Part shown: piece by piece, positions 32,987 through 37,869 of the stretch
Layout: every line of letters starts with the position of its first letter
Position numbering within the stretch: the first letter of the stretch is position 1
Source: Salpingoeca rosetta
Lineage: Eukaryota; Protista; Choanoflagellata
Assembly (NCBI GenBank): GCA_033442325.1
Contig: JAWQFM010000014.1
Coordinates: forward strand, 1,596,468 to 1,660,467
Length of the DNA stretch: 64,000 bases
Reading direction: 5' to 3'
The notes under the pieces: model-generated
What the model was told of the DNA's origin: nothing
The model's database searches: none
Seen by the model: the letters and a program-made list of their open reading frames with translations, nothing else
Made by a program: the position numbers and the translations under genes

Positions 32987-35900
32987 ATGAGCGGCGACGC
33001 TGATGACGGGGAAGGCGAGCACGTTCCTTTGCTGGAGCAGGCTGGCGGACGAGATGGCGACGAACGAGGCGGGACTGGCAATGGGAGCGACGGCGGCGGT
33101 GGCAGCGGCAGCAGTCAAGGAAGGAAGAAGAAGGGTGGCAAGGGGCTGTCAAGAAGGTCAGGTTTGCGGGCAAGCCTGATGCGGGCGTCTGCGTGGTTTG
33201 GTGTTGACGATGCACCACAGATTGGGGTGGCGGTGCGAGCCAGCAAGAAGCAGCGCAAGCGGTCGAGTGACAAGCAGGGCGAGGGGTCGCCAGCCTCGCA
33301 CTCAAGCAGCCCACAGCAGCAAGGCCAATACAATGGAGCAGCCGAAGGCATGGGCCCTTCTTCATCCGCAGCAACAGGGGTTGCAGATACAACCGCAGCT
33401 ACGTCTGCCTCAGCAACGACAGACACAGCCCACCTGAAGAGCGCTTGGTTTCACGGGCGCATCAGTGCGCAGACGGCGCGGCGGCGGTTGGAGACAAAGA
33501 GCCCGGGGTTCGTCGAGGGGGGCGTATTTCTTGTTCGACAAAACTCCCACTGCGAGAACATCCTCGTCCTTGCCTGCAACGGGCGCCCGTGGTCCTTCAA
33601 GATCCATGAAGTCTCACCATCTCGTGACACACATACAACACAGTTTCGGCTCGGGTCAGAAACAGCCTTCCACACCATGCCAGATCTCATTGCACACTAC
33701 CGCAGCACGCGCGGTGGCCTGCCGTGTCGTCTGACTGCTGGCGTTCCGCGCCGACGCGACAACCTCAAGGTGAGCATTGCCTTGCGCCAATTGTGTGTGT
33801 GCGTACGCGTGCGTGTGCGTGCGTGCGTGTGCGTGCGTGCGTGCGTGCGTGTGTGTGTGTGTGTGTGCGTGCGTGCGTGCGTGTGTGTGTGTGTGTGTGT
33901 GTGTGTGTGTGTGTGTGTGTGTGTGTGTGTGTGTGTGTGCGTGCGTGCGTGCGTGCGTGTGTGTTTCCTTGTTTTCTTGTTTGTGGGTTGGTAAAGTGTG
34001 TGGATTGTCTCTGGCTGTGTTAGTCATCCCCTGTCTCACCGCTCCACCTCTCCAACATTCCGCCCGCCTCATCTTCGTGCATCATAACTGCAACGTCCCT
34101 TCTTGTCAGCGCATGTCCATGGCGCTGCTTGGCGGCCGCGGGCACGAGGAAGCAAAGGACTGGCAGGCGCAGGCGGGCCTCGAAGAAAGCAACGCCACCT
34201 CCACCGCCAGGACGCGAGACGATGGAACAACGACCGGCACACCTTCAGTGTCCTCGTCATCACCGCCAGCAGCAGCTGCGATTGCAGAGTACAATTCTGG
34301 CGATAACGGCGAGAGTTACGGGACTGCAGGCGGTGACAGGAGGAGGAAGAAGAGGAGAGGAACACGGCGTGATGGAGGAGAAGGAAGGAAAGAGAGGAGG
34401 AGTGAGAGAAATGATGACGGACGCGGTGGTGGCAGTAGCGGTGGCGGCGGTGATCGGGGGAGACGAGGGCACAGGAGGAGCGAGGACGAGTCGAGTGATG
34501 ACGACGACTACGAGTATGAAGGCGGGTATGAGATTATCGGTATGGACCAGTTCACTCCATGGTTTACCATCATCGTCACCGTCGTGCAAGTCATTGTCAT
34601 GGCTGCAATCCTCATCCGCACGGGTCTGCAAACCGTCTCACGCCAACACGACGAGGTTCGCTCTGTGTGTGTGTGTGTGTGTGTGTGTGTGTGTGTGTGT
34701 GTGTGTGTGTGTGTGTGTGTGTGTGTGTGTGTGTGTGTGTGTGTGTGTGTGTGTGTGTTTGTGTGTGTGTGTGTGTACACATGAGTGAGGTGCTGAGCGC
34801 TCTTTCCACCGCTCCGACTGTTGACACCCACGTCACGCTCGCCTCAATAATCGCAGGAACTTCACTTTGGGTGCTGCGTCAAAGATGACGAAGGATTTGA
34901 GGTGTGAACACACCACGACTGCACTTGCTTCGCTGCTTTCCTTCACCACAAAGACACAACCACGCATACCCTTGCACATCCATGCACATCACCTCACCTT
35001 ACACCACCACCACCACCACCACCACCACCACCAGTCGTGCGGCATGACAGCTGCTGACGGCTGCCCTGCAGATGCCTCGTTTCTCGGCGCCGGCGTCGCC
35101 TGTCCTTCATCCTGCTGTCAGTGCACTTGGGGAAGGGGGGGGGGCGAGGCAGGGGAGAAGGGGCTTCGTGGTGGTGTGGTGTTGAATGTTGGGTTTTGCT
35201 GACTGCATTTGCTGCATGGCGCGATGGTGAATGTGCAGATATGGTTTCTGGGTTACGCTGCACTCCAAGAACAACAGCACCATCATCATCATCATTGCCA
35301 TCATCTGCAAACACCTGTCCTCACACCAAACCACGTCATGTCTCAGCTGAATTTCGTCTTCGCCCATGCTGCACGCAATCAAACGGAACGTGTCAGGTCC
35401 TCACCAGAGGTGTGTTCAATGGCGTGTGCGTGTGTGCGTGTGTGTGCGTGCGTGTGTGCGTGTGCGTGTGTGTGCGTGTGTGCGCGCGTGTGTGCGTGTG
35501 TAGTTATGGTTTGGGTCTTTGCTTCTTTTTTCATGTTGGCCAAGTGTTTGCTGTGCTCACCACCACCACCATCACCCCTATCGCACCCGTCGATGTGCAG
35601 ACCACTGCACGTTCCTCTCCGGCATCTGGCAGTCGGATGCGCAGCTCTGCAGCGACGTCAGCTGTCTCAAACACACGTGCGGCTTCAGCATGAAGGTCAG
35701 AACTGCCACGCACGAGGAAAATCTACCATGTTGTACTTGTTGTTTGTGCGTGCGTGTGTGTGTGTGTGTGTGCTTGCATTGCCCTTTTCACCCGTCCGTC
35801 CGTCCGTCCGTCCGTCCGTCCGTCTGTCTGTCTGTCTTTTTTGGCACTTTACTCATTGCACGTGCCTGATTTGCCGCATTGACAGGACCCATCGGAACCG

Positions 35901-37869
35901 AATCAGTGGTATCGCTTCTTCACGTCCATCTTTGTGCATGCAGGCATCATCCACATTGTGAGTACACAACCAGCATACGCGCCAATATCTTCTGGCGTGT
36001 GGGTTCTCTTTCAAGCAACTCACGCTCACGTTCCACTTTCCATCTTCCCGCCTGATCTCGCCACTACAATGACGCCCTCACCAACCGCTCACCCCTGTCA
36101 TCACCACCACCACCACCACCGCTCACCACTGTCATCACCACCACCACCACCACCACCACCACCACTCCCATCAGTTTATCGTTGCGACGTTCCAGTGGAC
36201 GGCTGCCGCCGCCGTTGAGCGCAAATGCGGATTCCTGCGCATGCTGCTCATGTACACCATCGCCTGTGTTGGCGGTACGCGGCCGGGTCGCCAATCTCGT
36301 CTTGTTTGAATGTGTGCAGCTCTTGCCTGGCTGTGCCATGTATGTGTATTCGCGTGCTAGTGGTGGCTGCACCTTGTGCTCGTGCCCATATTTCCTACGA
36401 CCACTGCATGCCCACCTGTGCACGTCCTTCCTCTGTGTGTATGTGCGTCATTTCAGGCAATTTGGTGAGCGGCATCTTCTCTCCGCTGTATCCACAGGTG
36501 AGATGGCGATGTACAAAACGTGTGCTGTGCCGTGATCGCGCCGTGTCTCTTGTCTTTGCAACATCACTTCATCCTCGTTCCACATCACGACGTGTCATGA
36601 TGACCCCCTCCTCCCAAATCTCGTCAGGTCGGCGCTGCCGGCGGAGTGTTTGGCGTTCTCGGCATCTCCATTGTTGATCTCTTCCACGTACGATCATTCC
36701 CGGTCATGTGTTTTGCACCACTCGTCATCCATTGTCATCCGTGGTGCACACACACATTCGCACACATTCACACACAAACACACGCACGAGAAAGCAATGC
36801 CCTGTGCGTACTGCACCTGCCTTTCTCATCAAGCTCTTTATGTGTGTGTGTGTGTGTGTGTGTGTTTGTTGGTGATTCGTTGGCAGTCGTGGCCGGTGAT
36901 TGAACGGCCGATGTCCAAGCTGCTGTCACTTCTCATCGAGGTGAGCCAGGCACGCGCACATGCACGTATGTACATGCACACGTATGTACATGCACACGCC
37001 ATGTACCACAACTAACCGCCCCTCCCCCCAACATGTCATTGCGCACCATCAGATTGCTGTTCTATTCTTCATCGGCACTCTCCCATGGATCGACAACTTT
37101 GCTCACATCGGGTACGTGGCGACACGCACGCACACACACACACACACACGCACGCACACACACACACACACACACACACACAAATTACGGCTCTCTTTTC
37201 ATGTATTGCGTATGAACCTTAGCTAATCCATTCCCCCTTTCCCTTCAACATACATGTTCTAACTCCGCCCAATCCTTCCTGCAGCGGATTTGTGTTTGGC
37301 GCCGTCTCCGCGGTTGTGTTTCTCCCATACGTCACCTTTGGCAAATTCGATGCCGTCAAGAAAGGGTGAGGTGTTCATGTTTGGTTTTGACCTCACGGGG
37401 TTGATTTCTGCTCCTGTTGTCGCTTCTCATAAGTGGGCATTACCTGCCACAGTCACAACACACTGCCCACAACATCCACTCTTTTCCTTCGCAATCCTTC
37501 TGTATCAAGCGCTCACCATTGACGCTCACCTGTGTCCATTCGACACCTGCAGTGTACTGCTGTGCGTGTGCATTCCGCTCTTGATTGCGCTCTTCGCTGT
37601 TGCTCTCATTCTCTTCTACGAAATCCAGGACTCTGAGTTCTGCCCGGGCTGTGACGCAATCCAGGTAGCGTTGTGTGTGTGTGTGTGTGTGTGTGTGTGT
37701 GTGTGTGTGTGTGTGTGTGTGTGTGTGTGTGTGTGATGCAATTCACTTGTTAGCTGCGTGCACCTCACATCTTACATGTCCATCCCCCCTCCCCCAATGC
37801 CACCACCATCTCCGCCGTTGTCAGTGCATCAGTTGGGTCTCTGGCCTGTGCAACAGCATCGACTTTTGA
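32987..37869 (+). CDS. SH2-domain-containing inactive rhomboid (iRhom/RHBDF-like pseudoprotease)
   Basis: Exon 1 (32987-33769) encodes an SH2 domain (WFHGRIS...GVFLVRQ...DLIAHY...GGLPCRL). A phase-0 splice joins exon 2 (34110-34655), which ends in TM1 (PWFTIIVTVVQVIVMAAILI). Cys-rich luminal GCCVKDD...RPCCTQSNGTCQVLTRDHCTFLSG...LCSDVSCLKHTCG follows. Rhomboid core PNQWYRFFTSIFVHAGIIH, ERKCGFLR, GNLVSGIF, VGAAGGVFG, LPWIDNFAHIGGF, FLPYVTFGKFD, and C-terminal CPGCDAIQCISWVSGLC. Confidence 0.9.

Follow-up and report, generated by a model that had tools for sequence, protein, structure and literature searches.

An expressed Salpingoeca rosetta gene joins an SH2 domain to a predicted pseudoprotease of the iRhom family

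A 64,000-nucleotide stretch of the genome of the choanoflagellate Salpingoeca rosetta (the window; C14:1596468-1660467 of a 55.4-Mb assembly, G000, in 68 contigs) carries at positions 32987-37869 of its plus strand a gene whose single transcript encodes an SH2 domain followed by a rhomboid-like membrane protein with the features of an iRhom. A preliminary description, made from the sequence alone, had proposed it as a pre-metazoan iRhom wired into tyrosine-kinase signalling. The explanation that we consider likely is that this is an expressed SH2-iRhom-family gene encoding a catalytically dead escort protein, the tail of which would dock on phosphotyrosine (pTyr). That such docking would gate the control of a membrane client is a step that we infer.

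The gene was modelled as 15 exons with an unbroken frame of 745 codons and GT-AG borders at 14 of 14 introns; the window is GC-rich, and its introns are packed with (GT)n/(CA)n repeats. In two stranded RNA-seq runs (2026) coverage was confined to exons, and the read direction was that of RNA from the plus strand. The junction between the SH2 and the first transmembrane (TM) exon, 33769/34110, was spanned by 2+5 raw stranded reads with 37-48 nucleotides (nt) on the shorter side. It was also present in RNA contigs of 4916 and 2811 nt, from two older runs of two other studies, which run collinearly from exon 1 through all rhomboid exons to past the stop. The single spliced open reading frame of the preliminary description is therefore seen in reads and contigs of three studies. 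Separate transcripts for SH2 and rhomboid, which that description had named as its refuting case, did not appear: SH2 and rhomboid are on one transcript. Six more junctions are listed directly in the RNA data; the remaining ones adjoin masked repeats and were accepted because contig coordinates, per-bin depth, GT-AG sites and the open frame imply them. Exon-length sums fit the RNA contig coordinates exactly; these leave 74 letters for exon 7, 295 between 36273 and 37552, and 553 between 34639 and 36175, the last being taken up below. No differing letters between RNA and window DNA were reported over the gene stretch. The features of the gene are as follows.

32856-32986, plus strand: 5' untranslated region (UTR); an RNA contig begins at 32856, right after a (CA)n tract
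32987, plus strand: start ATG, the first in-frame ATG
32987-33769, plus strand: exon 1, 261 amino acids (aa), predicted cytoplasmic N-terminus with the SH2 domain; donor GT at 33770
33146-33238, plus strand: iRhom-type N-terminal motif (LSRR…ASAWFGVDD…), from motif comparison
33446-33736, plus strand: SH2 domain (WFHGRIS … FLVRQN … LPCRLT), aa 154-238, from Pfam and PDB matches
34110-34655, plus strand: exon 2, low-complexity basic/acidic linker, TM1 and start of the luminal loop
34497-34538, plus strand: acidic tyrosine cluster DDDDYEYEGGYEII at the end of the linker, just before TM1, read from the sequence
34551-34616, plus strand: TM1 (FTPWFTIIVTVVQVIVMAAILI), alignable both with its counterpart on the orthologous contig L001 and with the TM1 of paralogues and iRhoms, which reads HRPFFT[WY]W
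34857-34901, 35035-35116, 35347-35409 and 35601-35695, plus strand: exons 3-6, Cys-rich iRhom homology domain (IRHD)
34869-34889, plus strand: GCCVKDD, an IRHD motif
35361-35686, plus strand: RPCC…LCS.V.C…CG, an IRHD motif
35886-35957 and 36175-36274, plus strand: exons 7-8, TM2-TM3
~35940, plus strand: HAGIIH, TM2 region, in exon 7
36457-36497, plus strand: exon 9, both junctions directly listed in the RNA data
36628-36687, plus strand: exon 10, TM4 with the active-site position, VGAAGGVFG
36887-36940, plus strand: exon 11, SWPVIERP loop
37053-37111, plus strand: exon 12, TM6, LPWIDNFAHIG
37080-37111, plus strand: LPWIDNFAH within TM6
37285-37365, plus strand: exon 13, FLPYVTFGKFD loop
37319-37351, plus strand: FLPYVTFGKFD itself
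37553-37664, plus strand: exon 14, TM7 and the first portion of the C-terminal Cys motif
37638-37851, plus strand: C-terminal CxxCxxxxC, across exons 14-15
37825-37869, plus strand: coding portion of exon 15 with the stop; the 3' UTR extends further, into the 3' end of a neighbouring convergent gene
37867-37869, plus strand: stop codon of the spliced model

The protein as assembled is incomplete. RNA from three studies carries 180 nt (60 codons) between 34639 and 34640 that are not in the window, so that 553 letters lie between 34639 and 36175 where the window exons give 373. Eleven raw reads of one run proceed past 34639 with non-window sequence, and other reads reach the exon-3 acceptor from a different sequence ending in the window's 34640-34653. 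Neither the window nor any other part of the 55.4-Mb assembly contains the opening 28 letters of the insert, and the window also lacks its closing 30. Its translation, from …SFKPITSQRD to …FVNLA, corresponds to two exons of the L001 orthologue, the one after TM1 (ISFKPTVSSRDVQ) and the one that begins the IRHD (…GAKFNPCMRKDTAVFVELANQN). Since the mRNA holds 60 extra codons matching an orthologue, the real protein has about 805 aa rather than 745, and the assembly lacks the start of the luminal domain. The difference has two possible sources: a mistake in the assembly, or a genuine in-frame deletion allele, which would remove the GAKF.PCMR portion of the IRHD.

The SH2 domain was recognised by Pfam PF00017 at 29.9 bits (cut-off 21), and a genome-wide scan gave 32.5 bits at the same place. 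Against PDB (177,635 distinct sequences, searched with single exons) it matched 69 solved SH2 chains at E<0.01, with Grb10 at the top (7e-9); Grb10, Grb7 and Grb14 ranked best, then SYK and CSK. The FLVR arginine, noted earlier as intact, is in place in GVFLVRQN (33521-33544). Around the SH2 domain, the N-terminal tail, in which 408 aa precede TM1, has an iRhom-like motif. LSRRSGLRASLMRASAWFGVDD lies upstream of the SH2 domain, and an SR…[WF]FG[VIL][DG][DE]-type motif in the same context was found in the N-terminal tails of 90 of the 111 metazoan iRhoms fetched. The WFGVDD-type motif is also kept in the orthologue P0001 and in two S. rosetta paralogues (C3 and C21b, below). The BLAST match of this tail to the iRhom tail is weak (E 0.037), the Pfam iRhom-tail family PF12595 was undetected in the window gene at E<=1, and the WFGVDD stretch had no match in PDB.

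Reviews define iRhoms by a long cytoplasmic N-terminus, an IRHD of ~230 aa with 16 Cys between TM1 and TM2, loss of catalysis, and an invariant proline that turns GxS into GPx (PMC3149277, PMC6451368). In the window gene all the IRHD, rhomboid-core and C-terminal motifs listed in the preliminary description sit where it had placed them. The loop between TM1 and TM2 has 13 Cys in the 113 aa present, plus the 60 aa found in the mRNA only; the corresponding loops have 16 Cys in animals and ctenophores, 18 in the S. rosetta paralogue PTSG_07804 and four in fungi. The core has the layout of a 6+1-TM rhomboid and is alignable with iRhoms over its whole length, and Pfam Rhomboid (PF01694) matched exon 7 at 26.8 bits and exon 10 at 14.2 bits. 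Not all of the motifs that had been called iRhom-type are specific. Those of TM6 and of the C-terminal Cys cluster occur also in active fungal rhomboids and are therefore not diagnostic; to judge by these alignments, diagnostic value is confined to the IRHD and the FLPY.TFGKFD loop.

At the active site the catalytic Ser is replaced by Ala (VGAAGGVFG, 36628-36663), with the same sequence in the RNA contigs, while the His at the catalytic position of TM6 is kept. The Asn of the TM2 HxxxN motif is absent from the window gene and from the whole IRHD clade, and present in the fungal and bacterial rows. With GAAG and no TM2 Asn, the protein is a predicted pseudoprotease, catalytically dead by its residues. 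The animal route to the same state looks different: the TM4 site reads GP… by regex in 100 of 111 metazoan iRhoms (84 GPAG, 14 GPSG, 1 GPAA, 1 GPTG; the remaining rows gave no regex match at the site), and GASG in ctenophores and fungal rhomboids. No ctenophore or choanoflagellate member compared has the proline. Death of the window gene by Ser→Ala without Pro is apparently independent of the animal GPx route.

The ctenophore iRhom orthologues (P0031 from Mnemiopsis leidyi and relatives) share 44-46% of their residues with animal iRhoms, and their IRHD has the full 16 Cys; even so, they carry GASG and the TM6 His. Sponges, cnidarians and bilaterians are all represented among the GP… matches (metazoan rows P0066-P0176), which makes the proline a trait common to the non-ctenophore animals sampled.

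Family membership was supported by single exons. The TM6 exon (E 8.6e-4), the FLPYVTFGKFD exon (E 0.016) and the orthologue's GAKFNPCMRKD exon (E 0.0034) each matched only iRhom1/2 in PDB. IRHD exon 6 (HCTF…LCSDVSCLKHTCGF) had iRhom1/2 as its sole significant matches (E 0.007-0.011), the only further rows being two of complement factor H at chance level (E ~4-5). Exons 14 (TM7) and 8 (TM3) had no match there. A word-based search with the TM1 region of a paralogue returned a single sequence, PTSG_07804, and 150 homologues were collected starting from it and from a Mnemiopsis relative. When the spliced TM1-to-end protein was compared with these by BLAST, metazoan iRhoms were best (up to 210 bits, 40% identity over 255 aa), other choanoflagellate-type IRHD proteins had a median of 180 bits, ctenophore relatives 176 bits, and fungal active rhomboids 116 bits, in the core only.

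A tree was built with IQ-TREE from 35 rows and 464 columns (LG+C20+F+G4), with fungal and two bacterial-type rhomboids as outgroups. All IRHD proteins formed one clade (99/93), apart from the fungal "rhomboid-type serine proteases" and the two bacterial-type rhomboids. In this clade the Metazoa, among them ctenophores and a sponge, were grouped at 97/95, and a choanoflagellate group of PTSG_07804, EukProt P0028, paralogue C3 and P0029 (98/96) was sister to Metazoa (84/90). Constraining all non-metazoan IRHD rows to one clade cost 8 log-likelihood units in the approximately unbiased test (p = 0.038); because the group was picked with the tree already in view, this hints only weakly at old paralogy. 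A long basal branch of the IRHD clade is formed by P0037 (935 aa, from a Logan contig), an IRHD-rhomboid with GASG in which the TM6 His is lost (LDNFGLLACF), a further independent route of dyad loss.

The S. rosetta genome holds four IRHD-rhomboid genes, the window gene included, with four different active-site states. The other three are:

C21:234800-240000: paralogue PTSG_07804 (P0027), GASG with the TM6 His kept
C3:4800-8500: paralogue C3, GASP
C21:382800-387800: paralogue C21b, GANP

Each of the three has a TM1 of the HRPFFT[WY][WY] type or similar, GAK[FY].[PA]CM, GCC, RPCC…CG and an iRhom-like core. Among 110 SH2 matches in the genome none adjoins these three, and only that of the window lies next to an IRHD gene. 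A second candidate SH2-rhomboid, on contig C9, was rejected: its SH2 domain belongs to a separate Shc-like PTB-SH2 gene, and the rhomboid has its own start. This rhomboid (C9:1877000-1886999) is an EF-hand RHBDL-like protein with an intact HxxxN, 4.7 kb downstream of the Shc-like gene on the same strand, and its 3' part is interrupted by a run of N.

What the protein may do can be proposed by analogy with its relatives. It would not cleave substrates. Its role would instead be that of animal iRhoms, which bind single-pass membrane clients and escort them without catalysis. Through its TM bundle and IRHD it would bind the client and control its exit from the endoplasmic reticulum, its activity or its degradation, as iRhom biology suggests (PMC6451368, PMC12615303). 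The cytoplasmic SH2 domain would, as SH2 domains do, dock on tyrosine-phosphorylated partners, such as substrates of receptor or cytoplasmic tyrosine kinases, and the protein's own YEYEGGYEII cluster might serve as a self-ligand. Tyrosine-kinase activity would then set the place or time of the client's trafficking, activation or degradation, making this a possible pTyr counterpart of the phosphoserine/14-3-3 switch on the mammalian iRhom2 tail.

Animal iRhoms are binding partners and escorts of ADAM17 or of EGF-type clients, and they also bind FRMD8; in S. rosetta, candidate clients exist. The preliminary description had suggested looking for ADAM10/17-like sheddases, and genes of both kinds were found on contig C21. 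An ADAM17-like gene (C21:121300-122700) encodes reprolysin and disintegrin domains, and 14 of its 14 PDB matches are ADAM17 (best 8e-10); an ADAM10-like gene (C21:350500-353300), with the same two domains, has ADAM10 as its best PDB match (5.6e-21). Further reprolysin-type genes lie at C10:1881254-1882840, C16:957664-958299 and C25:107100-107486. The ADAM-like genes show the existence of candidate clients, nothing more; the most obvious candidate would be the ADAM17-like metalloprotease.

Several points weigh against reading the window gene as a pTyr-docked iRhom. Its IRHD is shorter than that of animals (~173 aa vs 211-241), and the "invariant" GPx proline of iRhoms is missing (GAAG). In the tree it pairs with paralogue C21b (97/93) outside the grouping of the choanoflagellate group with Metazoa, and RHBDL1-3 are not among the tree rows. 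On the SH2 side, no clear counterpart is seen of the βD4 histidine that many SH2 domains have, and the tyrosine cluster is not kept in the L001 orthologue, which has Phe in place of Tyr. Expression is low, with a depth of ~1-10 reads. In a search of 1.84 billion representative proteins with exon 1, the orthologues from other species were exon-1 pieces only; none was a full-length SH2-rhomboid. The idea of a pre-metazoan iRhom survives in part. By sequence and tree the gene appears to belong to the IRHD/iRhom family in the broad sense rather than to the ordinary rhomboids, lying within the 99/93 clade that excludes active fungal rhomboids. It is not a simple RHBDF1/2 orthologue; it is one of four paralogues, it falls outside the metazoan iRhom crown, and it lacks the proline that reviews treat as a criterion. 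Given the missing proline and a position outside the clade of the other choanoflagellate paralogues and Metazoa, a function shared with RHBDF1/2 is not guaranteed.

A broader reading, which we hold only tentatively, joins these observations: pre-animal IRHD-rhomboids would have been Ser/His-bearing and possibly active, catalysis would have been lost several times, and the dead copy that captured an SH2 domain would have become a pTyr-gated escort of an ADAM17-like client. The same tentative reading would have animals lose catalysis once, by proline insertion (in sponges, cnidarians and bilaterians, not in ctenophores), and choanoflagellates separately (GAAG, GANP, GASP). If this were true, kinase-controlled ectodomain shedding would be older than animal multicellularity.

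The strongest rival, which we regard as somewhat unlikely, is that the window protein is a dead lineage-specific paralogue regulating active relatives rather than an ADAM, diverting the substrates of PTSG_07804 in the style of Drosophila iRhom, with the SH2 domain providing timing only. Drosophila iRhom opposes Rhomboid-1 and works by sending rhomboid substrates to endoplasmic reticulum-associated degradation (PMC3149277). The presence of four IRHD paralogues, one of which keeps GASG and His, fits such a role, as does the pairing of the window gene with another dead paralogue away from Metazoa. The genome does contain ADAM17- and ADAM10-like genes, however, and since the TM2 Asn is missing from the whole IRHD clade, PTSG_07804 included, each paralogue is at most a candidate protease.

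A second rival concerns the tail: the SH2 domain might have lost pTyr reading and be a structural, phospho-independent module, leaving an iRhom-like escort with an odd tail. The modest Pfam score of 29.9 bits would agree with this, as would a βD region that departs from canonical SH2 domains in the PDB alignment. A single-sequence AlphaFold2 model of the domain was of low confidence and is unreliable (pLDDT, the predicted local distance difference test score, 47.6), its helix-strands-helix order fitting SH2. Both arginines of the pTyr pocket (αA2 in WFHGRIS, βB5 in FLVRQ), however, are invariant across three orthologous exon-1 sequences, the nearest solved relatives are the pTyr-binding SH2 domains of Grb10/7/14, SYK and CSK, and the genome has at least 110 SH2 matches alongside the large tyrosine-kinase set of S. 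rosetta (PMC4342544). We therefore consider loss of pTyr reading improbable. The tyrosine cluster DDDDYEYEGGYEII is pYEEI-like, and its role as a phosphorylation or self-docking site is speculative.

The 5' half of the fusion is conserved in a second species. The search with exon 1 returned two true orthologues, P0001 and P0002, both ending at the same exon boundary (…K/V). P0001, whose SH2 exon is 46% identical, lies on L001, a 3.9-kb, 37%-GC contig of another organism, on which the SH2 exon is followed on one strand by the TM1 exon and then the IRHD-start exon. P0002 comes from marine metagenomes, in contigs too short to show the sequence after exon 1. The other exon-1 matches checked were tyrosine kinases, Grb7/10/14-like proteins and other SH2 proteins, with no SH2-rhomboids among them, and a metagenome scan for more SH2-exon orthologues gave one unrelated SH2 only. 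That SH2 and rhomboid are separate genes joined by chimeric contigs or by a faulty gene model or assembly is scarcely credible and already contradicted: the Logan contigs are indeed assemblies, one of them continuing into the neighbour's 3' end, and the genome assembly has its 180-nt discrepancy within the gene, but seven raw stranded reads from two runs cross the GT-AG junction (shorter overhang 37-48 nt), the frame is unbroken across 15 exons, and the second species shows the same exon order.

Set beside known proteins, the window gene is closest to the metazoan iRhoms (RHBDF1/iRhom1, RHBDF2/iRhom2 and Drosophila Rhomboid-5). Common to both are the long cytoplasmic N-terminus with an FFGV-type motif, TM1, the Cys-rich IRHD (GAKF.PCMR…GCC…RPCC…LCS.V.C…CG), a core without the TM2 Asn, LPWIDNFAH in TM6, the FLPY.TFGKFD loop, TM7, the C-terminal Cys motif and the lack of a catalytic serine. 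Unlike them, it has GAAG rather than GPAG/GPSG, a shorter IRHD with fewer Cys, no detected PF12595, a branch outside the metazoan clade and a unicellular host, and its tail holds an SH2 domain, which was found in no other protein fetched. The Ser/His-keeping IRHD-rhomboids (PTSG_07804, EukProt P0028 and M. leidyi P0031) have in common with it the IRHD, the 6+1-TM architecture and the 99/93 clade. They differ in their 16-18 Cys in a full-length IRHD, in lacking an SH2 domain, and in GASG or GGSG with the TM6 His, by which they may be active.

The next-best relatives of the core are the fungal "rhomboid-type serine proteases" (chytrid, Glomeromycota and Ascomycota; P0036-P0056), which resemble the window protein in GARF.PCMR after TM1, PDQWYR before TM2, P.[IL]DNF.HIGGF in TM6, TM7 and a C.WC.YL.C tail. 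Unlike it they have intact GASG and HxxxN, a loop of 75-98 aa with four Cys and no IRHD, no FLPY.TFGKFD loop and no SH2 domain, and they form a separate clade. For the SH2 domain, Grb7, Grb10 and Grb14 are the best solved relatives (E 7e-9 to 2e-6), with WFHGRIS, FL.R and (V/G)LPC+L in common; theirs is C-terminal in soluble RA-PH adaptors, whereas here it lies in the tail of a polytopic membrane protein. In mammalian iRhom2, phosphorylation-dependent docking on the tail controls the iRhom-client complex (PMC6451368), and the proposed analogy would lie in this dependence on phosphorylation. The mammalian tail, however, is a phosphorylated ligand read by 14-3-3, whereas here the tail would be the reader, through SH2, and the mark pTyr.

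No paper was found joining SH2, rhomboid or iRhom, and choanoflagellates, nor describing this architecture. The sequence itself is not new, the genome being public and an automatic gene model presumably existing. Reviews confine iRhoms to metazoans, as the preliminary description had said (PMC3149277, PMC6451368), and the function and defining features of animal iRhoms, known for controlling the shedding of ADAM17/TNF and EGFR ligands, are set out in PMC6451368, PMC3149277 and PMC12615303. What is new is the reading that the iRhom architecture predates animals, that S. rosetta has four copies with four active-site states, and that one of them, dead by a non-animal route, carries an SH2 domain. 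Together with the three paralogues and the ctenophore relatives, the locus points to the proline as a later animal trait and to catalytic death more than once. The fusion is a natural experiment that places a pTyr reader on an iRhom tail in a host with a very large tyrosine-kinase network (PMC4342544). The ancestral job of iRhoms and the coupling of shedding to kinases become testable in a unicellular relative of animals. Transfection and genome editing are possible in S. rosetta, and for that reason both questions can be addressed directly.

Two neighbouring genes were seen in the window. Upstream, on the minus strand, a 465-aa open frame (31280-32677) contains long Q/E runs and two copies of a C.(L/V)C.E.F…RAWAAHKRRSK(R/Q)HR…LLYASRR motif; minus-strand RNA contigs are found at 32450-32750, and the frame looks like a divergent neighbour. 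Downstream, reads of the opposite direction rise sharply at 37938-38300, so the 3' UTR of the window gene overlaps the 3' end of a convergent SH3-SH2-BTB gene (38265-45020). One RNA contig passes through both genes.

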